Under the pieces are notes generated by a model. It did not search any database. It had not been told where the DNA came from and saw nothing but the letters and a program-made list of their open reading frames with translations. A DNA stretch of 64,000 nt from Asterias rubens (Eukaryota): assembly GCF_902459465.1 (NCBI RefSeq), contig NC_047081.1, positions 9,796,001 to 9,860,000 on the forward strand. Direction: 5' to 3'. Every line of letters starts with the position of its first letter. Position 1 is the stretch's first letter. Both the position numbers and the translations under genes were made by a program. Shown here piece after piece: positions 3,456 to 32,497 of the stretch.

Positions 3456-6400
3456 TCAACTGGCATCTGACTCTGTTTTACCATATCTAGCCACTAGTTC
3501 ATCAGTTAGAGAGGGACGGCACCAGTCTAAGGCACTTATAAAGTGTTTTTGTTGTACGAAGCAGGAGTCCACATTGTCCAAGCCGTGCTCCTCAAGCGCC
3601 AAGAGGCCAGCCTTTAAGACAAAAAATAGAAAATGAAAAAAAAAGGTCTTAAAAGTATGTAGAAGATATGGAGGTATTGTGGGATATGTTTTGGAAGTAT
3701 GATTTGATTATTTACATGTATAAACATATAACATGGATTCAGGGTGGACACCTCGGATAAAGAAAAAATGTCATAGTTTTTGTTTTGACCTCTTTTTTCT
3801 CTTAAGTTCTGCATCATTGAATTTTGGGAAAGCAATATATTCACGTGTGCCATCATCTTTTGATGCAAGCGAGAGTTCCATTGCTTGCTTCATAAAGCCC
3901 ATGCATAGTAGACCATTATACGTGCACATTGATATTTGGCCTACACTGTTGCCCATGGCATGGCGCATTATAAATATACACTATTAGTGTGTAATGCACT
4001 ATGTACAAACAAAGTCTATTTCTTATAATAGTTACCTCTCTACAAAGCCCTTCTAAATCTGCTCCCGTGTACATATGAGTAACGTCAGCTAGATCCTCAA
4101 GACACACGCCTTCATCTAGTGGCATACGCTGTGTGTACACAGACAATATCTCCAGTCTTCCCTATAGGTAAAAACAATTTCAGAATCATTTCATTTATTC
4201 ATTTCATTTCACTTTATTCTGGTTGTAAAGCCAAGGACTCGCACAAAAACGAACTTCAATGATGAGAGGAGACATGGAAGGAAGTTTCAGTTTTAGATGT
4301 TGGAGGAAAACCCACACGATCAATTAGGGACTGATTTGGAATTACAAAGAGTTAACATCATGTGACAACCTTGTTCATATTAAATTTTGTGGGGGCTTGA
4401 AAATAACTCCATTGTGTCCCGTAATGAACGTCAAATAACATCAACACGAGTAGTCACAAATTCGATTTAAAACAAAAGCAGGATTTGAAAAGTAGGATTT
4501 GAGTAAAACTAAGATCATACTGATGGAAACGTTGAGTCGTTAACCACTGATCTTTTCAGAACAAACAGTACTCAAAAGAGATTTACACCAAGTGCTACCG
4601 CAAACCTCACTTTACAACAAAAGTGTTTTATAACTTACTTGTTTATCGGGTGGTGGTACGTAGATCAAGCAGTCGAAGCGCCCAGGCCTAAGCAATGCTC
4701 CATCAATCAAATCGATCCTGTTACTAGCACCAACAACTAGCACCCTTGGTGTATTCATCTCCGCTTTACCATCACCAGCCCCGCCCTCAGTGGGTGTGTC
4801 CTCACCGGGCGGGACACCTATGCCATCCATCTCTACTAGGAGGCAGGAAAGGAGGCGCTCTGATTGGCCGCGCCCTTTTTCGGTGCCACGCCCACCTATC
4901 AAGGAGTCTAACTCATCCAGGAAGACAATGGCGGGCGTCGTCAACCTCGCCTTCCGGAAGACCTGAGTTGGGTGAAAGTCAATTTGTATCGTCATTATAT
5001 CTTGAGATAATTTTTAGAATTAGTGACAAGGGTGAGCCTTGACTTTAGTTTTTCTACCGACATACCTCACTAATGATTTTCTCCGAGTTACCAACGAATG
5101 GAGAGTAGAGCTCGGCACAGCTGAGTGAGAGGAACGTTGCCTTGCACGCTGTGGCAGCAGCCTGGGCCAGCGTTGTCTTACAGCAACCAGGCGGTCCGTA
5201 GAGCAACACCCCCGATGGGCCTCGGACCCCAAGCCGAGCAAAGCTCTGCCAGTGTGTCATCGGCCACTCCACCGCCTGAAACAACAGATTGATGTTTAGG
5301 GAACATGTAAAGCTCTTGTTAATCACAGATTTTGTTGTTGATGACAAAAAGTACTATTAAGGCCAGAAATTAGAAGATAAGGGATGAATTTCACAAAGAG
5401 TTAAGATTAGTCTTATCTCGTGTTAAGACGAGTTACTCGTCCTAACTTTGGACTAGCCTTAAGTTTTTACTATCTCCTAGGACTAGACCTAAGTTTGGAC
5501 GAGTCCTAACTATTTGTAAAATCGCCCCAAGATCATCCAAAAATGCACTTCTGCGAACATCACTTCTGTTTTTGTTTTTTGTTTTTTTTATGCTTCGAAC
5601 ATAAAAATTGAAACAGAACTATACCTGTTTGAGTTGTGACTTGACGTCTGTCAGTCCACCAATAGCATCCCACCCCACCGGCTGAAGCTCCTTCAAGATA
5701 GACCCTGCTGCTCGATGAAGGGAGGGTGTCACATGACTCAGAGAACCAATAAAATCCTCCAAAGTCACAGTAGGGCATTCCTGTATTCCATCAAATAAAA
5801 CAACGTTATTTATAAATCTCATTTGTTTGTGGTATTCACTGGTTTTAGCAAAACCTTGTGAATTATGTATCCTTTTTTTTTATACAGCTACCCAACTAGA
5901 GTTCTTACAAAAGTAAGCCATTTGTATCGTTTAGAAGTGTATGCAAAAATAATAGTTTTAATTATGCCCGCATTTTCATCAGGACTCAAGTTTTCCAGAA
6001 ATCATCTCTACTCCTTAAAGGCATTGAACACTATTGGTTATTACTAAAAATAATTGTTGGCATAAAAACTTACTTGGAACGAGAAAGTTTTGGGGAAAGA
6101 GGTTATTTTTCACTCAAACAATAAAAAACTTCAGCCCTGAAGCCTTTTATCAAGCATCTGAAAGCACAGGGTATTTTTTCTGTCATTATTCTTGTGCAAC
6201 TTCGATGACCACTCGAGTCCAAATTGTCACAGGTTTGTTATTTTATGCATATGTTGGTATACACCAAGTGAGATTTCCGGAATTTGACAATTACCAAAGG
6301 TGTCCAGTGCCTTTAACACAGATTAGACTTACCAGTGAGTTGGACAGACCTCCGTCTGCCTGATCTTGACTGATTCGGCCTAGAGCTCTGAATATAGCCT

Positions 6401-8784
6401 GCTGGCACAGCGAGGCAAGATCTGCCCCGTTGTAGCCATTGCACTGCTTCGCCAACTCACTCAGATCCACATTATCTGCAAGATGCATGCCCTGACAATG
6501 GCACTCTAATATGGATGCTCTCTGTGATGTGGTAGGCATGCCTACCAAAACCTAGGAAATGAACAACACGAGTGGCTTTTGATTTCTTTTCTCTTACAGA
6601 AATAATTTGACATAAATTTCATCAAAATGATTTCATATGATGATGATTATGAAGACCGAGAACAAAACAGAAAAGGGAACACAAAAGGACTCCGTGGAGG
6701 AATTCTAAAGGCTGATGAGGTGCTCCACAAAGTTTATGGGAGTTTCTTGAATACAGGGTCGCATGCTTATTTCTTATCCGGCAATATTTTAAGGGAAGCT
6801 TTCTATCATCATTATCTTTAAACCGTGTAAGTTTGAAATAAATCTGTGGAAGTTTTTGTTTTGTGTCGTACAAAAAGTACCCAAACCCTTTAAGAAAAAC
6901 TTTCTCTCATGAACTCACAAATCCTAGACTTTACCTCTTGGTCAAACCTTCCAGGTCGTCTCAGCGCTGGATCCAACGCATTAGGTCTGCTGGTTGCCCC
7001 GACAACCAGCACTTTACTCTGACCCCTGACCTCATCCATTAGCATCAGGAGCTCGGCAACGACCCGGCCCTCGTGTGTTCCTCCGTCGCCGTCCCTCTTG
7101 GGGCAGAGTACGTCCAGCTCGTCGATGAAGAGGATGCAGCGGTGGGTCTCGGCGATCGTCTTGGCCTTAACGAACACCTGGCGTAGGTTGGTCTCACTCT
7201 CTCCAGGACTTGATCCGAATATTTCTGCTCCATTGATTTGTAAGAGACACACCTGAAAAATACATTTAAAAACATCAATCATCCAAGGAAGCTAACCAAA
7301 TAAATTTGATTTCAGGCCTTGAACTTCACTCTTGAGGGGGCACTCTATGACGAAAATTATTTTGGGGGTTATTTTGTGGCCTGTTCTTTGCATAATTTCA
7401 CAAAGCTTTTTGGAATAATTTTGCAACATTTTTTTTTTTCACAATGTGAACCAAGCAGACATCTGCTCTAGCAATGCCAATGTCTTGGTTTGAATCCCAT
7501 CCATGTGATTTGCCTGTGTTTTTTGTACAGAAGATGAAAAATCGAGATAACTTTTAAAAAATGGGTTTTAAGAACCTTGCATTGTGAAGCAACAGACTGC
7601 ATCAACGACGTCTTGCCGCATCCTGGAGGTCCTCTCAACAGAATCCCGTGAGACTGCATCAGTCCGAGTCTCCCCAGTGACTCTGGATATTCAGCGGGGT
7701 ACTCGATGAGTTTCTTGAGTAACGACATCGCCTCCTCAAGACCTCCGACCTTAACTCCGCGACGATTTGAATAATGCTGCGTTGATTCGGTGCTAGAGAT
7801 GTTCTGAATGTGGATTTTTGTCTTCTCGGTGATCAACTGCACAAATGAACTGCCACCTGAAGGATAGGATGATGAACTATCAACATGGGGTAGCTCTGTA
7901 CTATCATGTGATACCCTCGAACTCGAGACTTCATCGACTGATGTCGCTTTGGACGACAATGATGAGAGTGAAGCAGAGTGTTCCTTGGCATGAATAGTTT
8001 TCGACTTAGAGAAGTCAGAGGATGCATCTTGAATCGGCGATGAAGACGGATCTAAGGCAGGTGATGTACTCTGTTTATCAGAAGATGCTTCACTCGTAGA
8101 GTTGTTTTCAGCCCTGTTTAAGTTATCGGACAGAAGGGGTAAAGGTACGTCACCATCACCACCTACAAATGAGTTACCAGATTCTTCTTCCGCAGATTGG
8201 GTACAAGAAACACCCTTTTCTCTTTGATTTGAAGCTCGTCCCAAGCCTGTTTGATTATTCTTCTCCACTAAACACTCATCAACAGCAATGTGTAGAATCT
8301 TCGGACCTGCAAACCCGGAACTCGACTGGATCGATATCATACAACCTTTCCTAACGGCGTATCCCACCAGGAGATGCCGGAGCTGTCTAATCACGGCCTC
8401 TCTCGATGCTTGCTGAAGATGTCTTAGATTCTTAAAATCGGTGATGAGGGAAACTTTGATTCCTTGAGACGGAGGCGGCTTTGGGATCAGCTTTATGGAT
8501 TCAACGGTAACGCAGTTCGTCTTTGATGTCTGGGATCTGGACTCCTCCGAGTGCACAGTTACGGTTTCTTGAACCTCTATCCAACCATCTTGAAGATCGT
8601 TCCTTAGCCACAACGAGCAGATGCTTTCATAACCGTCATGTTGGACAATACACCAGCTTCCCAGAGGTACTCCGAGCTTGTCAAGCTCGGTTGGACCAAC
8701 AAAACAGCGCTGAGTGCTACTCCCCAACATTGATGTTAAATTTATTATTGACATGTCGATGCACCGATGTTGAGTCTTGACCAT
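3456..8784 (-). CDS. SPATA5L1: AAA+ ATPase SPATA5L1/AFG2B (ribosome biogenesis), 8 coding exons, ~905 aa
   Basis: Exons (minus): 8784-7576, 7252-6935, 6551-6333, 5780-5625, 5275-5066, 4962-4639, 4161-4036, 3611-3456 (TGA). All introns are GT-AG and phase 0, and the frame stays open. D1 has GPPGCGKT, FIDELD and RRPGRFD; D2 has GPPGCCKT, FLDELD and LRPGRFD. GSSPGESETNLRQVF and SPFVGNSEK match SPATA5L1 rather than SPATA5/VCP. An acceptor AG lies directly before the ATG, implying a non-coding first exon (candidate donor at 9296). Confidence 0.92.
5381..5529. mobile_element. Palindromic MITE (GGGATGAATTTCACAAAGAGTTA / TAACTATTTGTAAAATCGCCCC ends)
   Basis: Imperfect inverted termini and internal GGACTAG/CTAGTCC-type palindromes; SPATA5L1 intron 4. 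Confidence 0.55.
6019..6312 (+). mobile_element. Kolobok/T2-type MITE, diverged subfamily
   Basis: TTAA-AGGCATTGAACAC ... GTGTCCAGTGCCT-TTAA, in SPATA5L1 intron 3. Confidence 0.75.
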
Positions 8785-9643
8785 CTGAGAAAAAAATTAA
8801 TAATCAGAGTTATATTACCTAAATCAGGCTAATAAAAATGACCACTGGGCGCTGTTGATTTTTGTTGCAAATTTATTCCTTTTCAACGAAGGAATGATTT
8901 AAATGAAGTTATTAACCCCCTGCTTAAGTTAATGCAATCAGAATCATTATGTGATGTTCTCAAAATTTTCTTGTGTTTCGATTGAAACATCATTGTAATA
9001 ATAAAAAACAATTCAGTTAGTATGAAGAAGTCGTAATAGTATAATTTATTTATAAAACCAAAACCGATAAAAGTAACTATAATAAAACTAGCATATATTG
9101 TTGTCAATCTGATTTTTATTAATATCTGAAAAAGCTAAACTTATGTTGTTTATTTTTATTGATGAATATTGGTGAAAGTCACAAGTGGCAATTTCATTCA
9201 CAACTCAATCAATTTAAAATTTTAGTATACAAACAGATCAGGATATTGAATATTCATAATAAAAAAAAACTTAAATATGGGGGTTTTTTTTTTTACCGCA
9301 CTTCACCAGAGTTTGTTGTCTTCGAAGTAGCCCTTATTCTTAATTTGACCTGTCCTTCCTCCTGTAGACTATGAACTGATTGAAGCTATGCAAAGGCGCT
9401 TGGTCGTTATGGTTACAGATCCTCTAAATCTACATCATTGGCGGCACCTTACCTAGAGTTTGAGTTGATGAGATTACAACACTCAGTGGTCAGTCAGTGT
9501 TGTTTTGAATAATCAGTAAACACGTGTGCGGTAATATGTTAAAATCGATCTAGACTCCATGATTGCATTTTACAAGTCAAACGAAATAGGCACCAGTCTA
9601 GAGGTAAATGAGTTTCTCAAACTAAAGAGGGCGCTATTCCAAG
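8785..9643. promoter_or_regulatory. Bidirectional promoter region SPATA5L1/MRPL54
   Basis: Divergent start codons 860 bp apart. YY1-type AAGATGGCG at 9641-9649 overlaps the MRPL54 ATG; a CCAAT-like motif lies at ~9437-9443. Confidence 0.6.
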
Positions 9644-11302
9644 ATGGCGACTTCCATGAACAAGTTTTGTACTTTCATCATGCGACAACAAATTATCAGT
9701 AAAACAACCCTTTTCCCAAGTATTTCTCAGCGAACATGTCTGCCATATCAACATCCAGCTGGTCAAGGTGTCGTTTTCAAAATTCAGGCAGCTACATTCG
9801 CAAAGAAAGCAGGTAAAAACGTAGATTTTAAATTTAAAACATTACTACTTTTATTTAATTTTAAAGTTCAATGCGCCGTATTTTTGACCGCGTGATGGCG
9901 CTCTTAAACATATTTGTATCACTTTCTGGGGGGTATTCACCATTATTCATTCATACCCAAAACGGTTATTCATAAATACCCCAGACAGTTTCTCTACTCC
10001 TATTGGTGGAGAGCGCGTCATGTGGGGGTGTTTAAACGGTTGATAATGACCAGTGACCCCAGTGTTTATAACCGGCTAGCTTCCGCGTGTCAGGCGCGCA
10101 AGATTATCATGCGGAACGCTATTCATAGCTATTAGTAACAGCGCGTAATCTACTTCTAAGCGTGCGCATAATCTATTTCTAAGCGTGTGCGTGCACACAA
10201 CCCATGTGCAACAGACTCTTCATTCACAAAGTTTTTGACAAAAATATTTCAAACCTCAAATTTTCAACTGTCAAAGTGTCTGTAATTGTATTTTTTTAAC
10301 GTTTTTTAACAAAAGGGCAGTTATGAATGCGAATAAAAGAGTAATGACTCATTTTTAAATGTCAGTTTAAAACCTTGCAGGGTCGTTGCCGTGCGCATAT
10401 AGCCCGAGCCTTCGGCTCGGGCCTTGATTACACGGCAATTCGACCCTGCCGGCTTTAAACGGCCGTGTAAACTGTAAGCACTCATCGCTACCCATTTATT
10501 CCCTTATTTGATTAAAGACTGGAACACATTACCCCTGGAAGTGATGAAAATAATATTCAGAGCGCTCTCGCAGTCAAAAATACGGTACATTCAAACCAAA
10601 AGTCAAAGGCAAAGCAACTATTTATCATTATTTTAATTTTTTATTCATTAATTAAAATAAGACTGAATGCAGACAATTGCAATTAATTACCCGAGTTGCA
10701 ATTAAAACATGGTGTTTTTATTGTGGTTTATTTTGCATTTAATTATTTAATACTTCCAATAATTAATTCAGATATATGTCAACATTGGAACGTCCAGTTA
10801 TTGTTTATTGGCAATAAATAAGGATCTGGAATTGCTTTGCTTTGTATACATAGTACTTATAATATATATAAGAACAGAAGAAGTGTTTATATTGCATTCC
10901 TCGTGTGTCTGTCAGTTCAATGCCAACATTGAACAGTCAGTTATTGGCAACAGCTTTATTTTGTGTCAAAATAAGGTCATATCAACAAGAATTAGCCTCA
11001 CTTCTTCTTTCCTTCTGTCATACACAGGAAGAGGCAGGTCAGTTGAGCCCAAAGAGTTAATGCAAGTCAACACAGACGCAGAATACCTCGTGTCACACTG
11101 CTCCGGCTCCAACTACTTCAAGGAGGGGCAAGACATAAAGCTCGGACCCGATGAGGACTACCCAGACTGGCTGTGGGATCTTCACATAGGACCTCCGTTG
11201 AAGTTGGAGGAGATGTCTCAAGACTCACCTCAGTACTGGAGGAAACTACGAGAGATGCACATGAAGAGGAACAATCGACTCGCTAAGGTGAAAAAGTTTT
11301 AG
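9644..11302 (+). CDS. MRPL54: Mitochondrial ribosomal protein mL54, 2 exons, 147 aa
   Basis: Exons 9644-9812 (donor GTAAAA) and 11028-11302 (acceptor ACACAG), phase 1. The N-terminus is basic and transit-peptide-like. The C-terminal NYFKEGQDIKLGPDEDYPDWLWDL...YWRKLR...NN is typical of mL54. Confidence 0.92.
9896..10080. repeat. Dispersed repeat family (copies at 25799-25903 inverted and 43415-43650)
   Basis: GGGGGTGTTTAAACGGTTGATAATGACCAG is shared in inverse with 25820-25850; ATTCATTCATACCC...GTTAT is shared in inverse with 43615-43630. Confidence 0.65.
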
Positions 11303-11485: not shown

Positions 11486-13430
11486 TTTAGGGAATTGTTT
11501 GCCATGGATATTCAAACTTTGAAGAGATCGGTTTTGAAACATGGAGGCTCATCAGGGTGTTCTGTTGGGAAACAAAATCTGTTAACTGTTTGTGGTGTGC
11601 GGCATCAGCATCCAGGGACACCACATAATGTTGGTCTCTGTGGAGCGACTGTTTCATGGAAAAATTTGGGAGTTAGTTTTGGCGGAACTTGTAGTCATTT
11701 TACTTCTCGACTAGTCGCGCCTCAAATAGTCATGCTTCGATTCAATGTGTCTAGTCGATAGTTAAAATTGTCTCAATGTTAAAAAAAAAATTGTTTTCAA
11801 GCCACTTTAATTTTTTCCTTCATTTTTCTCTACTTTATTGATTAATCTCACCACAATAATATTGTCATATTGAACAAAACCTACCGTTACCTGAATATTA
11901 GTACCATGCACACCATTGTTTATCTGTATTATAATTCAGCCTGTCGGGCTGCTATATAGGCAGATTTTAATAAACAAATTAAAAAAATATAAACAAAGTG
12001 TCATATTACCACAATTTTTTGCCTATAGTGCAAAATCGTTCCGCCAAATGTCTGCTTGGTGAATTATATGTTATTTTATTTTTTACTAACATCACAAGGC
12101 TGGACTTCAAGCTAGTTAGCTTGGGCCGGGTGAACTAGACCACACGGCAGTGACACTCCACAAATGTTTACTAAAATACAAAAAACTTCATGCTAATGTT
12201 GAAAAGTTGACAAAATGCACATTAAAACTACAAGTTGTTCTCACACTCTTCACCATAAAAACAAAAAACAACAAAATTAACAGTCTTAAAATCAAATGAA
12301 CAAAATAATAGGTTGTGGTCTATACGATACATTGTATTCTGGTTAAATATTTGTTTAAATTACTTTCATTTTAGTTACAAAAAAATAACAATATTTGCTC
12401 CATGCAATATTCATGCCCCCCAAAAATATTAAATCTATATTTTAAAGAGTGTTAAAATTAAATTACCAAATAAAATATATACATGTACTCTGGTCTAAAT
12501 ATAATTATGATACATTGTATACTGTTTATAAATATAAATTGTTTAAATAAATTCAATCTTTGCTCCATATATTACGCATGCTCCAAGAAAAATTGTTTAT
12601 TATAAAAGTTTATATAACAATGTTAAAAAAACAAAATTACTCCAGATGGTGTAAATATAATATACATTCTATACTGATTTTTTACATATTCCAAATTACA
12701 AACCATTATCTTTGCTCTATTTAATGCACACATAAAAACGTTTTTAAGAGTAACCCTCTGAAAAGAGGGGTTGCACAGCACATTTTATGATCCAAAAGAA
12801 AAGTATGACCTACACATAGTTCTTTTGATGGAAATTTTGTACAAGTGGTTCCTTTCATCATGTTTTCACCTTAATTTCTTCTTTTTAAAGAAAATTTTCA
12901 CTAAAAAAATCTCTAAATTTTGCAGACAAATTATAATAAAAAGTTCAACTTAATGTTTGCACTTTATGTTCAGGGTTGACCGATAAATGGGTTTGTAAAG
13001 TTTCTAATGACCTGTGATCTGGTATTTGTACTGATTTGGGGGAAACTGGTCTAAACCTTTTTTCAAAGTACCAAGGATTTTTTACAATTAATTCAAAGGG
13101 GCACAGTGCATTCAAGTCTCTGTGTAGAACTAATCCTTATCCCCTTTTTTGCATGCACTAAAACCTTACAGTGTTTTGAAATTAGCGAGTAGTGGTTAAA
13201 AAACAAAAATTGTCCTCTGGAAATACAACCAGCGGAACTAACAGCCTGCCATTTTGAGGAGTAAATATTTTGGTTCCTAAAAATAGCCGACCGTGTTCTG
13301 TCTTGAAACTACACCAAAAACAAACAATTTCAAGAGATACTTTTTGTGAATCTTTTCTACTCTTGCAATATTTCAGAACAAAATGTTTTCATTGTTCAAA
13401 GTAGCTTGAAAGGCAACGTGTCCCTTTAAA

Positions 13431-13809
13431 GGCAATGGACACTATTGGTAAGTACTCAAAATAATTATTAGCACAAAACCTTACTTGGTAACGAGTAATG
13501 GGGAAAGGTTGATGGTATAAAACATTGTGAGAAACGGCTCCCTCTGAAGTGCCATAGTTTCCGAGAAAGAAATAATTTTCCACGAATTTGATTTCGAGAC
13601 CTCAGATTTAGAACTTGAGGTCTCGAAATCAACCATCTAAACGCACACAACTTCGTGTGACAAGGGTGTTTTTTTTCTTTCATTATTATCTCACAAGTTC
13701 GATGACCATTCGAGCTCAAATTTTCACAGGTTTGGTATTTTAAGCATATGTTGAGATACACCAACTGTGAAGGCTTGTCTTTGACAATTACCAATAGTGT
13801 CCACTGCCT
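13431..13809 (+). mobile_element. Kolobok/T2-type MITE
   Basis: Same TIRs and body as 1655-2024; ends about 10 bp from the MtnK-like stop codon. Confidence 0.85.
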
Positions 13810-13819
13810 TTATGTCTTT

Positions 13820-16800
13820 TTAAGATTTACTCTCTGTTTCTAAGATGATGTGAAGCAGGTCCTTGGTTGTTGTGATGTTGCAATATCTTTTGGTTAACAG
13901 AACTCCAATATTAAGACACATCTTCTCAGCTTTTGGTTTACCCTGGAGATCCTTCGACTGGGCAATTCCAATCATCCTGAAAGCAAGCCAAGAAACAATT
14001 ATTAAATAAGCATTGACTGTGCAAGTCTCGCGCGTTTGTAAATTTCCAGGACCAAGTTCTGACCATGAGTTTAACGGATATGGACAACACTTTTCTTCAA
14101 ATACTTTGTGGTTCATTGCTATAAACTTGCTGACTTTCCATAAAGTTCACATAGTTGCAACTGGTACCCAACTCATTTTTCATCTAGCAAAAAAATTGGC
14201 TAAGCAGTATTTTCTGCTAAACGAGTGTATGAAGTTTGGCCCTGATGTGAACAGTGATATTTTCTGCTAACAGCACAGAGTGGACCTTTGCACAGTTTCT
14301 ATTTCATAAACACTGTTAACCATGCTGTCAATCTACTCGGTCATTTATGAAATATATTTTTGCTAACGCACATTTTTTCTGCTATGACAAGCTTACCCGT
14401 AAACGGCTATATTAAATATTGCTTCGATCTCTGCAAACTTCCGCTTCCTGAGTGGTACCCAACCCCCCAAAATGTTTTATATAAACTCTTACCATTTAAT
14501 GATATGACATCCAGTGAAGCCTGCAGTCTGGGACACCAGCCTAGACAGGGCTTCCGTACTGAGATAGTCCCTTGCTTCAAGGAAATAAACTTCCACTGAA
14601 AGAAAATGAAGATACAAAACACTTCTTACTTAAAGGCACTGGACACTATTGGTTAATACTCAAAATAATTGTTAGCATAAAAACTGACTTGGTAATTTGC
14701 AATGGAGAGCTGTTGATAGAATCACACATTGTGAGAAACGGCTCCTTCTGAAGTAACGTAGATTATGAGAAAGGGGTCATTTCTCGCTCAAATACATGTA
14801 TGGCCTGAAGCCTATTTTTAGGCATCTTAAAGTCAAACATCTTAAAGTCAAACATGTGTGCAACATGAGTATTTTTTCTTTCATTATTCTCCTGCAACTT
14901 TGATGACCAATTAAGTCCAAATGTTCACATTGTTATTTTATGCATATGTTGGGACACCAAGTAAAAATACTGGTCTTTGACAATTACCAAAGGTGTCAAG
15001 TGCCTTTAATCATCAATTCAAAAGAGGGAATTGATAATGCCATTTGATGGGCTGTGATAATACATTACAGTTGACTTTGGATTGTTTTGGTCTGCAAAAC
15101 CTTCTTTCTTTTCTATATGAAGAGTTGAAGTTTCATCTCATAGTCTTTCAGGCATATCAGATACAACCTTTATGAAAACCTTGTGCTTTAAATGAATGCT
15201 CACCTGTGGTTATAATGGCCTCTCTAATTTGGTGGCAGAAGGTGGGATAGTTCTTCTCAGGATACAACAGATTAGCAGCGTAGTAAAAGAGGTAGTTAGC
15301 AAGTACGATTCCAATGTCAGCTCCTGCTGGTCCCACAGAAGCAAACTCTGCATCAATCACCTTTGACAGGAATAAACCAAGATCAAATAATTGACTCTTC
15401 TTGTAAATGAGCAATTGTATGACTTATTAGATGGCCTCAGCATTCACGATTAGACACCAACCCTCAGAAAGCTGAGAAACGATTCATGCATAATAAACAC
15501 CAAGCTGGCAACGGCCAATCTCTCATCTATGATTATTGCACACATTAAGAAGCTGTGATTCAGTAACTAGACGACAGTTCTTATTATAGTCATAGTGAAA
15601 TCAGCTTGTAACCTACGAACCTACAACCTTGTGATTGCAAGTCCTGCGGTATAACCACTTGACCACGGTTTTGAGTGGGCCGCATTACCTTAGGTGTGCA
15701 TCCATCCACCATTACAGACCCAAGATGAAGATCTCCATGGGTAAGGCATTCTTTCTGCTCTGTGAAAATATCATTAAGTGTCCGAACCGACTCAAGAACC
15801 TCTTGGTCATCACGGACACTCCGAGCAAGGTCAGTCAACTCTGCCGAGCAGTGATTGGTCGGCTCGTTGGGGTCAATCACACCGGTAAAGGTCAAGTCGG
15901 AGTTCAGAGTCACCATTTCAGTGTTTCTGTTAAAATAAACAAATGCAAAGAACCATTAAGATTTAAAATTTAATAACTGTTTGTTGGGGGCGTTTGTTTG
16001 TTTGTTGTTTGCTAACAGTTGGGGTGTTTGTCGGGGTGTTGTTTTTTTTAATTGTTTTTTAAAATCACCTGGTTATTTTTTTCACAAGGAATTACTTTGT
16101 GATTTTAGATATTTTTGTAGCTCTTTATTTCTGTGTTGTTTTTATGGACAGATGCTGAGGAGCTTGGGTAAGGGTGTAAGTGCTTGTAACCCCTCCCCTT
16201 TTTGAATCCATTTTCTTTATTGGTGTCTCTTCTTTTATGGTGTCTTTTATGGGCATTTTTACCTGTTTTTTAATATATTTTGTTGTGGTTTTTTATTTGT
16301 TGTAGGCCTACTTTTAATGCTTACTTTTTGGTAAAGCGCTTTGAGGCTCTGTGTAAGGTACTTAATAAGTATCTATTTATTGCTTTATTATTATTACTCC
16401 ATTACAAGTCACACTACCTGAATGTTGATACCATTTCTTGAAAGTCCTCTGTTGATAATGTCTTGATGTGAGTGGCACGATGTAGTCTGGCGATGAGTAG
16501 CGCGAGCTCCTTGCCGAGGGCCATGTGTAGATGACCACGACTCAATTGTGTACTCATCATTTCATAACTTCTTAGATCCTCCATGACAACTTAAAAGAAT
16601 ATTTAAAATGGACAAGGTTTCTGTCGGGTTCTCCTACCTAGGATTTTTTCAAAACTTTGGGGTATTTCGAACCCTGAATTGAATCAAGGTCTTTGGGAAT
16701 ATTTTCTACTTTGTTGTTATCTTGGTTTTAAAAGTCCTACTGTATAACATAGGGCATTTTAAACAGTTTTTATTTTGATGACTTTTGAGAATTGGATCTA

Positions 16801-19335
16801 AGGAGGAAATGGCATTAGACAGCTTTGGTAATGGACCCTTCCCATGAAATATGCTAATTACATTCACCCATGCGTACAGACCCTGTTCGGTTGGCAAACG
16901 CCATAGAGTTGTGCACTAAACAGACGCGCAATCGCGTCTGCGTCACGCACCCATTAGCCGTGTACAAAACAGCGCAATGTTCTCTCATTTGCCAACCAAA
17001 ACGTTAGTGCGCACGCGCTATGTGCAATTTACATATTTCATGGGAAGGGTCTATTAGCTTTGTGGTGAAATTCAACACAATCTTGTACAAGTATTATGTA
17101 AAGCATTTGAGGTTCATCTTTTAAGGGTCTATTGTCAAAAACCAGTATTCCCACTGGGTATATCCCAACATATGCATAAAATAACAAACCTGTGAAAATT
17201 TTGACTCGATTGGTCAGCGAAGTTGCAAGAGAATAGTGAAAGAAAGCCAAACACCCTTGTTGCACAAATTTGTGTACTTCAGATGCCCAATAAAAGGCTT
17301 CAGGCCTGAAGTCTTTTAATGTTAGAGTGAGAAATTACCTCTTTCTCAAAAACAATGTTACTTCAGATGGAGCCGTTTCTCACAATGTTTTATACTATCA
17401 ACAGCTCTCCATTGCTCAGTACCAAGTGCGCTTTTATGCTAACAATTATTTTGAGTAATTACCAATAGTGTCTACTGCCTTACCGCATTTTGTGTCCTCG
17501 TCGTAGAAGTACATTTCAGGAACTGATCCAGGGACTACCTGGTGGTATTTCCTCATGGCTAGGAATTCCACGTTGACCCTCTCGGCTCCAAGACGTTGCT
17601 CTCGACCAAGAAACTGCAAAACGTAAAACATAAATCTCCTTAAAAGTTTTTTATCTTTTGTTTTTGGCCATGCATGACCTGAATTCCTACTCACTGTGAA
17701 TGAAGATGTATGTAAATAATTTACATGTAGAAGTTTCAGCTTCATTAGTTGACAACAAAAAAGTGAAAATTACAGAGCGATTTTTTCAGGAGAGTCCCGT
17801 AAATACCAGTACTGGTTATTTATAAGTATGTTGTACATGCTAAAATAATGTTCATGACATAACTTATTTCTCAAAACCTACAGCACCTCGGCAAGTAATA
17901 TTTTAAGGGAAGCTTTCTACTATCATTATCTTCAAATCATGTAAGTTTAATATAAATCTATGGACATTGAAATTTTTGTATTAATGTATCTTTGATGTAT
18001 TTTCATATAATGTGATGGCCCCCAAATGATCAGCTGTGCTGGATGGGTTACCTCGTTAAATATCGTTATTAATAAACTAATAAATTAGATTACACACTTT
18101 GACGAATGGAGGTGCATGCTTGATAATCACAGAGTTATCCGGCTGGTCCTGCCTTAAGAGTCGGTACACTTTGTTGAGAAAGCCACCACTTATACTTTGT
18201 ACTTTACAGTCAGAGCTGAACAACTGGCAACAGAAGACAAATTAAAAACTTTTTAAATGACAGTTTAACACAAAAAAAAATTGTTTCTATAGTCTTCATT
18301 ACTGAGAAGGCATACTGTTTATTTTTTGTTAATAAGAAGGGACTATAGATTTTCAAAACTGAAATTTTTGAAGTTCATTTGTTTAATTTTTCTCTACAAG
18401 AACTGAACCAGGGAGATTACAATAAATTGTATCAGGTTTCATTAGTTTTATAACATTTCTCAAATGTTTTTAGATATAACTCTGAAACAAAAATCAACAA
18501 AGCTTTTTAAAGGCAGTGGACACTATTGGTAATTACTCAAAATAATTATTAGCATAAAACCTTTCTTGGTGACGAGTAATGGGGAGAGGTTGATGGTATA
18601 AAACATTGTGAGAAACGGCTCCCTCTGAAGTGCCATAGTTTTGGGGAAAGAAGTAATTTTCCACGAATTTGATTTCTAGACCTCAGATTTAGAACTTGAG
18701 GTCTCGAAATCAACCATCTAAACGCACACAAATTTGTGTGACAAGGGTGTTTTTTTCTTTCCTTTTTCTTATTATCTCGCAAGTTCGATTACCGATTGAG
18801 CTCAAACTTTCACAGGTTTGTTATTTTATGCATGAGTTTAGATACACCAACTGTGAAGGCTAGTCTTTGACAATGTACTGTACTGAGTAGCCAGTGCTAC
18901 CACACATTTGTGTATTAGGTGAAAACCCAAATTAATATACCTCATTAAATAGTTGGGATTGTTCTCGTTTAACTTTTAAAACTTGATGGCACCCAGTCTA
19001 CTCGTAAATTTAAATTATTGTGGCAGTTAATGTACTTTATACAACATATTATGCGAAATACACACCTTTTTAATCATCTAAATAAATTAATTATTAGAGT
19101 TAAATTAAACCAGCAAATGAGATTTACCTTTTTGTAAAAATGAGTAAAAAATGAGTGAAATTTTTCTGGGACAGCAACAAACACTCATGATCAGGTTTGG
19201 AAATAGAAAATCTACATAAAACAAAAGGTCAATAGACCAAAATACCTGTTTCTTGCCATTATCGAAAGACATTTCCCATTTCTTTCCGAAGGTTCCATTG
19301 AGGAACTTTTGAATCGCCTCTTTGCTCATATCCAT
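13820..19335 (-). CDS. Methylthioribose kinase (MtnK)-like protein, APH/choline-kinase fold, 8 exons, 390 aa
   Basis: Exons (minus): 19335-19246, 18223-18098, 17613-17484, 16589-16418, 15926-15689, 15360-15204, 14595-14493, 13976-13820. Phases are compatible and the total is 1173 nt. Motifs: SGGFLNKVY, SVIIKHAPPFV, VMEDL, CLTHGDLHLGSVMV, IDAEFASVGPAGADIG, AGFTG...IGIAQSKDL, as in MtnK/MTK1. Confidence 0.85.
14634..15005 (+). mobile_element. Kolobok/T2-type MITE
   Basis: TTAA-AGGCACTGGACAC ... GTGCCT-TTAA. Confidence 0.8.
17125..17480 (-). mobile_element. Kolobok/T2-type MITE abutting MtnK-like exon 3 donor
   Basis: Reverse-oriented family body; terminal AGGCAGTAGACAC starts at intron position +4. 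Confidence 0.75.
18511..18874 (+). mobile_element. Kolobok/T2-type MITE lacking right TIR
   Basis: TTAA-AGGCAGTGGACAC left end; homology stops after TCTTTGACAAT. Confidence 0.8.
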
Positions 19336-19593
19336 TTTAGTCAGATTCCCGAATGGTGCAAACAAACGGAGCTTTATTCACCATAAAAATCCTTGAACAA
19401 TGTACATCGCAAGGAAACAGGAGGTCCACTCAAAAAATCAGCATGTATTACAACAATGACATGGGAAGTTAAGACTCGTAGGAATTATAGCAGTGTTGAA
19501 CTTGAAGTGATTTGTTGCTGTGAAAAGACTTCAAACAAATTCATCCGACAAAATGCTCGTAGCTAGCTGACTACAATAGAAAATATGTTCCAA

Positions 19594-19937
19594 GTTTGTT
19601 TCTGACTACACACACTAAATTATCTCAGTTCTTGTAGACCATAAACGACTAACAAACTTAAGTCAAATTCCTTCAATGCATTCTAGCGTAATATTCCCAC
19701 TCACTATCCAAACTGTATCCATACATTGTACATAAGTGATGATGGTGACTAATGAAGCAAAGATTTGTTTGTTTCTGACTACACACACCAAATTATCTCA
19801 GTTCTTGTAGACCATAAACGACTAACAAACTTAAGTCAAATTCCTTCAATGCATTCTAGCGTAATATTCCCACTCACTATCCAAACTGTATCCATACATT
19901 GTACATAAGTGATGATGGTGACTAATGAAGCAAAGAT
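19594..19937. repeat. 173-bp direct tandem duplication
   Basis: 19594-19764 vs 19767-19937; one substitution seen (ACTAAAT/ACCAAAT). Confidence 0.9.
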
Positions 19938-22022: not shown

Positions 22023-26069
<4,047 letters not shown>

Positions 26070-30850: not shown

Positions 30851-32497
30851 TTATGGTTGTATCTTGAGCGTCGACTCCCACACCGTCGACAGTCCAACAA
30901 GCGAGCTAATAAGGCCACAAAGTCCCTGGACTCCAACTGGAATTGGGAGATATCCAAGACTTGAAAGCGGAAGGAATATATCAGCCGTGTTCTTCACTAA
31001 ATCCAGAACGACTGGCATGTTTTGCTGAAGGCAAAGGATCACAAAGTCCAACTGACTACTGTTATTATTGGTGGATAAATGCTGCGAGTCTCGGCCATCT
31101 ACCCCGTTGGAAGTGTAGTGATTCCCGATCCCGCCGCCGCCGACGCGCTTTGCGTAGAGGGCCATCGCGTCGTTCAGCACGTTTGAGAGTTCGTAGAGAT
31201 CCCTTGACAGGTTCAGGATGAGAGTGGCCAGCCAGAATCGGGTGGAGAGGTTTGAGAGCCGCTTGCTGTCGACCTCGACGAGACCGATGCGATGCGCCCA
31301 CAGGGTGTGGTCTATCAGGAGGTAGACTGACTGGTTGAGTTTGGCGAGAGTGATGGTGAAGCTGAGGAAGACGTCCGGTAAATGGATTGTCTTCATTGCT
31401 GCGGTGATTGCGTCAAAACTCTTTCCGAAGCGAAACACTGAAAATTATATTAACAAAATAAATTTGGTTAAGACTTATTTTATCACATGAACACCTTGGT
31501 ATCGCTGGGCAATCTGATTGGTGTAAAAAACTGTAAGTGCCTCATCTTCCACCTTTGGGACCATGGTTCGAATCCAATCGGGGGCACTATGAAGATGGAG
31601 TTTTCAGACCCTACTTGAGTGCGTGGGTTTTCCCTGGAGTAATTCTTGGGGTTTTCCTCCCACATCTTAAACTGAAAGTTTCTACGTTGTCTGCTCTCTT
31701 CTCCTTTGGCTCTTGTAAGAGTGTTGAGAATATATCCAGATCTAGATTGCCAACAATATCCCGCTATCCAGTTTTCCTTTTCCTTTTTTTATTATTATAC
31801 AAAATACAATAATAATAATGCAGAAGAGCTTATGAAGGTTATATTTCTGGCTACAAATGTTACTGGCCAACACATACGGTTATCAGAAAATGTATTTTAT
31901 TATATTAAACTTTAAAATGGAGCACTCCCCAACCCTGCCCCTTTGAGTGATTTCATTTTGAGGCACAACGTCCCAAACCTACATTTCCTACTAGTGCCGA
32001 TTGTTTTCTCCAGCGTCTTGACTTTCCTGATAAGGTCTGGATCCCCGCTGCCCTGTTCAAGACACCACCATAGGAGCTTACTACCATACTGACAGGTTCT
32101 GTTAAAAAGAGAAATGAGAATGTGTCAGGACTATGAAGCCCTTCCACGGCGTGACTGTAGACCTTTCCTTTGTGGCATGCAGCTAGAATTTTTGATAGCA
32201 CATATGGGAGACCTTATGGAGACCAAGGAGCCTTTGTTGCCCCTGCTCTTGGCCTTAGTGCCCCTTCAGAAGTTCCCCGCAAAACAATTTGCTAAGTACA
32301 GACAAATTTTGCTTACCTGAAACTGGTTACCAGCCAAATTTCCACAAAATTCAAATTGTTGCACCTTGTACCTTTTCTAAGCAGTATTTTCTGCTAAACA
32401 GCTTTATGATAAGGCACTTGTACCTGTAAAATTTGTCCCTTCCAGCTGTCTGTCCACTAAACGTGATGATCTTCTTAGTTAAGTCCTTCGACATCAT
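30851..32497 (-). CDS. PEX11: Peroxisomal membrane protein PEX11 (alpha/beta pro-ortholog), 3 coding exons, 258 aa
   Basis: Exons (minus): 32497-32424, 32098-31983 (116 nt, as in human PEX11), 31437-30851. Motifs: QTAGRDKFYRTCQY, TSRKLFRFG, DLVKNTADIFLPL, GLCGLISSLVG. An acceptor near 32560 implies an upstream non-coding exon. Confidence 0.92.
31500..31665 (+). mobile_element. tRNA-derived SINE-like fragment in PEX11 intron 2
   Basis: Perfect B-box GGTTCGAATCC at 31565-31575; no complete cloverleaf. Confidence 0.5.

Follow-up and report, generated by a model that had tools for sequence, protein, structure and literature searches.

We analyzed a 64,000-nucleotide stretch of the genome of the sea star Asterias rubens (NCBI RefSeq assembly GCF_902459465.1, contig NC_047081.1, positions 9,796,001 to 9,860,000; hereafter, the window), in which a gene for a protein resembling 5-methylthioribose (MTR) kinase, MtnK, lies at 13820-19335 on the minus strand. 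The gene is intact, spliced, expressed, and under purifying selection, it belongs to the MtnK family, and an MtnK gene with the same seven introns already stood in the bilaterian ancestor. In sea stars, the residues of the phosphotransfer core are kept and several residues that bind MTR in the characterized enzymes are replaced, a combination that suggests a kinase whose acceptor may have changed.

An eight-exon kinase gene

The coding sequence comprises eight exons on the minus strand, totaling 1173 nucleotides (nt) and encoding 390 amino acids (aa), and in the joined minus-strand translations of 13700-19450 all seven introns run from GT to AG. Exon 1 (19246-19335, aa 1-30), placed by the gene model and by a spliced RNA contig from sequencing run X1, opens with the ATG at 19333-19335. 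Exon 2 (18098-18223, aa 31-72), which matches positions 28-66 of the NCBIfam MtnK profile TIGR01767, carries the G-loop SGGFLN at 18173-18190 and the ATP-binding Lys within VIIKHA; its length of 126 nt is kept in amphioxus, oyster, and urchin. The W-loop equivalent, FLGREQRL, is encoded by exon 3 (17484-17613, aa 73-115 and onward; TIGR01767 positions 69-107), whose 130 nt are kept across Bilateria. The gene model and the RNA contig agree on exon 4 (16418-16589), again of a conserved length, 172 nt. The catalytic loop HGDLH, here in the clade-specific form HGDLHLGS, lies at 15725-15739 in exon 5 (15689-15926), which matches both the APH family and positions 168-241 of TIGR01767 (E = 2.5e-12), and the Mg-binding DxE motif (D-A-E, in the context I-D-A-E-F) lies at 15346-15354 in exon 6 (15204-15360; TIGR01767 positions 247-276). 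By alignment to Bacillus subtilis MtnK, exon 7 (14493-14595) ends at the site of the twin-arginine (RR) motif, where its last codons specify K338 and W339 (14493-14497, completed by 13976). Exon 8 (13820-13976), supported by the gene model and the RNA contig, closes with the TAA stop at 13820-13822.

A single RNA contig of 1,495 nt from run X1 covers exactly these eight exons. It begins at 13789, giving the start of the 3′ untranslated region (UTR) as 13789-13819 as far as the contig reaches, and at its other end it takes in the 5′ UTR at 19336-19480 and extends 143 nt past 19480; if the contig remains contiguous there, at least 288 nt of transcript precede the ATG. Partial spliced contigs with the same joints are present in runs X4, X5, and X2, from three other studies, of which X2 and X4 derive from a second, closely related organism (the sister species). 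The transcripts of this sister species have a 3-nt deletion at 13952 that removes one Lys, which matches the 389-aa protein of Asterias amurensis. Against the sister species we count 19 synonymous and 11 non-synonymous changes in exons 2-8, and the ratio of non-synonymous to synonymous substitution rates (dN/dS) is ~0.16, a value that is approximate as it comes from an incomplete list of differences. The reading frame is intact across three sea-star genera. The first-pass annotation of this DNA had described an intact open reading frame of eight exons and 390 aa with HGDLH and DxE motifs: its coordinates proved exact, both motifs lie where given above, and the prospect that the gene might be unexpressed is answered by the spliced transcripts in four runs.

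The locus also contains a ~370-nt interspersed repeat resembling a short interspersed nuclear element (SINE), in four copies, one just 3′ of the kinase gene (13425-13788) and three in its introns (14629-15000, 17131-17481 in inverted orientation, and 18506-18874). The summed depth of this repeat in RNA-type contig sets is enormous, and it is therefore very high-copy and transcribed.

Membership in the MtnK family and presence in the bilaterian ancestor

Exons 2, 3, 5, and 6 match TIGR01767 in collinear order. Our stand-ins for the whole protein were exon 5 and P0075, an A. amurensis protein annotated as ‘methylthioribose kinase-like isoform X1’ that shares 94.6% identity with the window protein; the Acanthaster and Patiria proteins are 54% identical to the window protein. 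P0075 matches TIGR01767 at 212 bits over positions 25-399 of 401, and the next family, LxmK, reaches 56 bits. The equivalog cut-off of the profile, 275 bits, is missed by the Acanthaster (210 bits) and Patiria (222 bits) proteins as well as by P0075, and canonical animal homologs score 246-297 bits. Membership in Pfam APH (PF01636) is evident from the Acanthaster protein of the sea-star clade (P0003), at 42.9 bits versus a gathering score of 23.2; window exon 5 alone gives a sub-threshold 19.1 bits.

Comparisons with solved proteins point the same way. The closest sequences are B. subtilis MtnK (2OLC; 2e-31) and Arabidopsis thaliana MTK (2PYW; 1.5e-24), followed by PsiK (1.5e-6). An AlphaFold2 model of P0075 (predicted local distance difference test, pLDDT, 92.9; predicted template-modeling score, pTM, 0.92) has MTR kinases as all of its top 15 matches in the Protein Data Bank (PDB), among them 2PYW, 2PUN, and 2OLC, with template-modeling (TM) scores of 0.78-0.86; the best folds are 2PYW and 2PUN (0.81-0.86), PsiK scores 0.65-0.68, and choline kinases score about 0.5 or less. 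PsiK, the Psilocybe 4-hydroxytryptamine kinase (8ZIC, 9ETO), is thus the next-best solved sequence and fold and illustrates the same fold acting on a non-sugar, aromatic acceptor, but its match is much weaker than that of MtnK, is confined in sequence to the N-lobe, and implies no membership. We conclude that the sea-star gene belongs to the MtnK (5-methylthioribose kinase) family, as the first-pass annotation had proposed. Assignment to another APH-like family was considered and is ruled out, none coming near MtnK in profile, solved-sequence, or fold matches.

Homologs named ‘methylthioribose kinase’ or ‘methylthioribose kinase-like’ occur in sea stars, in urchins (Strongylocentrotus, Lytechinus, Diadema), in Holothuria and Amphiura, in two species of Branchiostoma, in Lingula, Owenia, and more than 15 molluscs, and in the sponge Sycon; the ichthyosporean Chromosphaera has one too. 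In the stramenopile Hondaea fermentalgiana, an MtnK domain is contained in a 1330-aa polypeptide (P0064), which may be a fusion resembling the Tetrahymena MtnAK fusion mentioned in an earlier report (PMC6302742). We built a maximum-likelihood tree of 59 rows without plants, A. thaliana MTK entering through the PDB comparisons. The tree unites the bilaterian sequences (67/89) and, within a starred clade, the four from sea stars (100/99). A further starred clade (99/97), which has no animal member, takes in every bacterium sampled together with the other eukaryotes. A grouping of Sycon with the bilaterians is not rejected (approximately unbiased test, p-AU 0.45).

The strongest evidence on origin comes from the introns. 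The window gene, Acanthaster, and the oyster Crassostrea virginica have in common the exon lengths x, 126, 130, 172, 238, ~160, ~106, and x, where x marks the terminal exons, together with the intron phases 0, 0, 1, 2, 0, 1, and 2. In Branchiostoma floridae and Lingula all seven introns recur at these positions and in these phases, and a few exons differ in length by 3-9 nt; the Strongylocentrotus purpuratus gene is without one of the seven. As the seven positions and phases are shared across Bilateria, the MtnK gene, with these introns, stood in the bilaterian ancestor. Intronless copies occur in two of the animals sampled: Patella vulgata has two MtnK copies in tandem (L018:10001-11167 and 13894-15060) and Sycon ciliatum has one (L020:10001-11143), in both cases among ordinary animal genes on chromosome-scale contigs; these copies may have arisen by retroposition, by loss of introns, or by an acquisition of their own. 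The first-pass annotation had left a choice between ancient retention and old horizontal transfer; ancient retention is what the shared introns bear out, the phylogeny it had called for places the sampled bacteria outside the animals, and a recent transfer finds no place in these data.

The same annotation had also described the animal gene as unrecognized, which does not hold, since RefSeq already gives the name ‘methylthioribose kinase-like’ to dozens of proteins from invertebrates, and orthology among animals is broad. In the literature we searched, we found no study of animal MtnK and no published assay of the invertebrate proteins carrying this name. What is new here is the conservation of introns across Bilateria and the sea-star-specific replacement of MTR-binding motifs; the presence of the gene in invertebrates was already in automatic annotation.

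The acceptor site in the sea-star clade

The structural elements of MTR kinases have been described in detail (PMC2194712). They include a G-loop of the form GXGNXN, whose Asn contacts O4 of MTR in the plant enzyme; an HGD loop, whose Asp polarizes O1; a DXE site for Mg; an RR motif, reported as ‘strictly conserved’, whose first Arg binds O2 and O3 of MTR; and a W-loop which, with two aliphatic residues, caps the methylthio group (PMC2194712). For the DXE motif we included the following Phe, which stacks on the substrate. We compared these elements among 275 full-length relatives of the family, in which the sea-star clade is represented by four sequences from Asterias, Acanthaster, and Patiria.

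At the RR site, 263 of the 275 relatives have RR, and KW is found only in the four sea-star sequences; in the window protein, the residues opposite the RR of B. subtilis MtnK in the alignment are K338 and W339. The Glu that precedes RR is His or Tyr in sea stars. The G-loop reads GDGNLN in 219 relatives and SGGFLN or EGGYLN in sea stars, which departs from GXGNXN and puts Phe or Tyr at the position of the MTR-contacting Asn. The form HGDLHTGS is present in 253 of the 275, HGDLHLGS again only in the four, and the W-loop aromatic residue (Trp) is Gln in the sea-star protein. At 80 positions one residue is conserved in at least 85% of the family, and the window protein has that residue at 61 of them. 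Fifteen conserved positions are altered in all four sea-star proteins, comprising four in the G-loop (E40, G42, D43, N45), six in the RR helix (A332, E335, R338, R339, H345, V346), T181 and P189 with a helix around them, and R128, T241, and F266. Among the residues kept are K65, E88, the HGD motif (H236-G237-D238), and the DxE motif with its Phe (D255, E257, F258), both of these motifs being invariant in our alignment; the G-loop also retains its final Asn. All three genera have the derived motifs in the same or almost the same form. Read from aligned residues, the pattern is that of an apparently intact phosphotransfer core beside a putatively remodeled acceptor site, constant over three sea-star genera.

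The contrast with the known enzymes can be drawn at two distances. Bacterial and plant MtnK/MTK (Enzyme Commission number 2.7.1.100; 2OLC and 2PUN from B. subtilis, 2PYW from A. thaliana) have the same fold, a length of ~390 aa, and a full-length collinear match to the sea-star protein, which shares with them the β3 Lys, HGD, DxE-F, and the last G-loop Asn. The sea-star protein differs from them in having KW for RR, SGGFLN for GXGNXN, Gln for Trp in the W-loop, and HGDLHL for HGDLHT, and its gene differs in having seven introns, in lying on an animal chromosome, and in the absence of an MtnN partner from the genome. Canonical invertebrate MtnK-like proteins (Strongylocentrotus, Lytechinus, Holothuria, Branchiostoma, Crassostrea, Haliotis, Lingula, Owenia) are nearer: they are 35-42% identical to the window protein, lie in the same bilaterian clade, and share the eight-exon architecture and phases (with one intron fewer in S. 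purpuratus), but they keep GDGNLN, HGDLHTGS, and RR, whereas the sea-star clade does not.

Other MtnK-like proteins, of lophotrochozoan affiliation, are also without RR, namely P0021, P0201, and P0202 (sister to Pomacea in the tree) and P0059 and P0222 (sister to Mytilus); they have SK, SR, or FR at this site. Remodeling of the RR site may thus have happened more than once in animals.

Pathway, surroundings, and likely function

We searched the 417.6-Mb assembly, in which the window corresponds to C21:9796001-9860000, for relatives of the gene and for other steps of methionine salvage. Only three loci match TIGR01767: the window gene and, at a distance of 2.2 Mb, two paralogues. One of these, parA (C21:12028252-12032534, plus strand), has exons 2-8 intact with the same exon lengths and keeps RR, with the motifs SGGESN, HGDLHASS, and D-L-E-V; the presence of 0.34 of the sampled words from its 3′ half in RNA run X1 hints at expression. 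The other, parB (C21 ~12078000-12083000, minus strand), lies ~50 kb from parA, is 78-97% identical to it in nucleotide sequence, and has a 1-nt deletion in exon 6 and HAD in place of HGD; it is likely a pseudogene, to judge from these lesions. A canonical MtnK is no longer present in this sea star.

MTAP is present on C13, with collinear exon matches, and MtnA/MRI1 on C15. The profile for MtnN (TIGR01704) gives no match at E <= 0.01 in the whole assembly, although control genomes matched. With these two outcomes of the genome check suggested by the first-pass annotation, MTAP found and MtnN not, endogenous methylthioadenosine (MTA) goes through MTAP and any MTR would have to come from outside; the sea-star kinase would have no MTA nucleosidase (MtnN/MTN) ahead of it.

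ATG5 stands head-to-head with the kinase gene on the plus strand, its first coding exon at 22023-22130 matching ATG5_UblA and later exons matching HBR and UblB, and the two start codons are 2,687 bp apart. On the other side is an open reading frame of MRPL54 type (10808-11302, plus), and further out lie an exon of the PEX11 family (30851-31438, minus; 130 bits) and an AAA-ATPase-like gene with a 438-aa exon (4600-8800, minus). The order is shared by Acanthaster, where a Ribosomal_L37/MRPL54 gene is followed by the kinase and then by ATG5 head-to-head, the annotated ranges of these last two lying 7.8 kb apart. Adjacency of ATG5 within 10 kb of the canonical MtnK was not seen in S. purpuratus, Holothuria, or Amphiura. 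The first-pass annotation had the kinase sharing a divergent promoter with ATG5, of which the head-to-head arrangement stands; the conserved feature is the neighborhood within sea stars, and a shared promoter is unproven, with 2.7 kb between the start codons in the window and 7.8 kb between the Acanthaster gene ranges. The interval between the two genes contains a tandem duplication of a 173-bp unit (19594-19937; 2.0 copies, 99% identical), which falls within the 5′ UTR of the kinase or immediately upstream of it.

We favor, at about even confidence, the reading that the product of the window gene is an active, ATP-dependent kinase of small molecules, which goes back to the ancestral MtnK of animals and whose specificity for the acceptor has been altered or broadened. 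The gene would have come by vertical descent from the MtnK gene of the bilaterian ancestor. The sea-star lineage would then have retained the nucleotide and Mg core (the β3 Lys, the catalytic Asp of HGD, DxE, and the last G-loop Asn) and rebuilt the acceptor pocket, with RR becoming KW, the preceding Glu His or Tyr, GDGNLN SGGFLN or EGGYLN, the W-loop aromatic Gln, and HGDLHT HGDLHL. Such a protein most likely still transfers the γ-phosphate of ATP to a hydroxyl of a small metabolite, and its choice of acceptors would be changed or widened relative to a standard MTR kinase. We regard the structure and expression of the gene, the purifying selection on it, its family, fold, and ancestry, and the replacement of its motifs as demonstrated, and we infer that the protein is active and that its substrate has changed. 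A precedent for a shift of this kind is DrdK, a kinase for 5-deoxyribose disposal in Bacillus thuringiensis, which is of the MtnK family, has a physiological acceptor other than MTR, is 59% similar to B. subtilis MtnK, and is encoded in a bacterial drdK-drdI-drdA cluster (PMC6079011). It indicates that the family can shift or broaden its specificity for the 5-substituent; by its published description, with which we compared it, the sea-star protein is far more diverged and without such a gene cluster. Several points weigh against the favored reading. A Lys at the first Arg position could still hydrogen-bond to O2 and O3 of the ribose, so MTR or 5-deoxyribose might be substrates, and the geometry of the pocket is deduced from an alignment to published structures. 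The placement of the sea-star clade is weak, the best tree uniting the echinoderms in one clade at 60/50, and, because the urchin, sea cucumber, and brittle star loci do not show the ATG5 synteny, the sea-star gene may either be orthologous to the canonical MtnK of echinoderms or represent an old paralogue.

The main competitor is that the protein is a genuine MTR kinase, perhaps also acting on 5-deoxyribose, which would take dietary or microbial MTR to MTR-1-phosphate and, through MtnA (MRI1), to methionine. By sequence and by fold alike, MtnK is far ahead of every other match, the catalytic core is preserved, and MtnA is at hand, so that the product would be usable. MTR would need an external source, given the absence of MtnN, and bacteria without MtnK do excrete it (PMC6302742); moreover, part of the role of the first Arg could be taken over by Lys, and tolerance of different 5-substituents is seen in MtnK relatives such as DrdK (PMC6079011). 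On the other side, the site that binds the ribose hydroxyls (PMC2194712) is KW here against RR in nearly all relatives, changes also affect the Asn of the G-loop, the aromatic residue of the W-loop, and further pocket positions, and the score of 212 bits lies below both the 275-bit cut-off and the range of canonical animal proteins, while MTAP already makes MTR-1-phosphate from MTA. We consider this account unlikely, if the most serious of the alternatives, and the scavenging of MTR proposed by the first-pass annotation doubtful for the sea-star copy, in which RR and the G-loop are replaced and the score falls short of the MtnK equivalog cut-off. The loss of several family-invariant pocket residues would also suit a dead or non-enzymatic derivative (a scaffold, sensor, or pseudoenzyme) or a gene drifting to loss, and the frameshift and HAD of parB indicate that the family is partly decaying. 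This is improbable for the window gene itself, in which each of the residues from K65 to F258 listed above is kept, dN/dS is low, the frame is open in three genera, and four runs contain correctly spliced transcripts. The idea of a recent horizontal transfer from bacteria, or of contamination of the assembly, could appeal to the nearest non-animal relatives, bacterial MtnKs of ~30% identity such as that of Poribacteria, and to the intronless copies of Patella and Sycon. It is effectively refuted by the seven spliceosomal introns, whose positions recur in amphioxus, oyster, and Lingula, by the location between MRPL54 and ATG5 in both Asterias and Acanthaster, and by the separate animal clade, and we give it almost no weight.

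A wider form of the favored reading, which we hold tentatively and with somewhat less than even confidence, joins two propositions: that sea stars have a lineage-specific kinase for a different metabolite, its pocket rebuilt and its core intact, and that the bilaterian ancestor had a second, kinase-based entry to methionine salvage for external MTR, which many marine invertebrates would have kept and which was apparently lost where the gene is absent from our matches, for example in vertebrates. MTR kinase has been treated as an enzyme of bacteria, plants, and protists without a mammalian homolog, and as a selective target for drugs and herbicides (PMC2194712). The surprise is limited, as the gene was already visible in automatic annotations. 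The MtnK family is nevertheless ancestral in Bilateria and survives in echinoderms, amphioxus, molluscs, a brachiopod, an annelid, and a sponge. MTAP is present in these animals too, and the question arises of whether marine invertebrates salvage sulfur from environmental or microbial MTR. Within this family, the sea-star clade would be a natural experiment in respecifying the acceptor pocket of the kinase fold.

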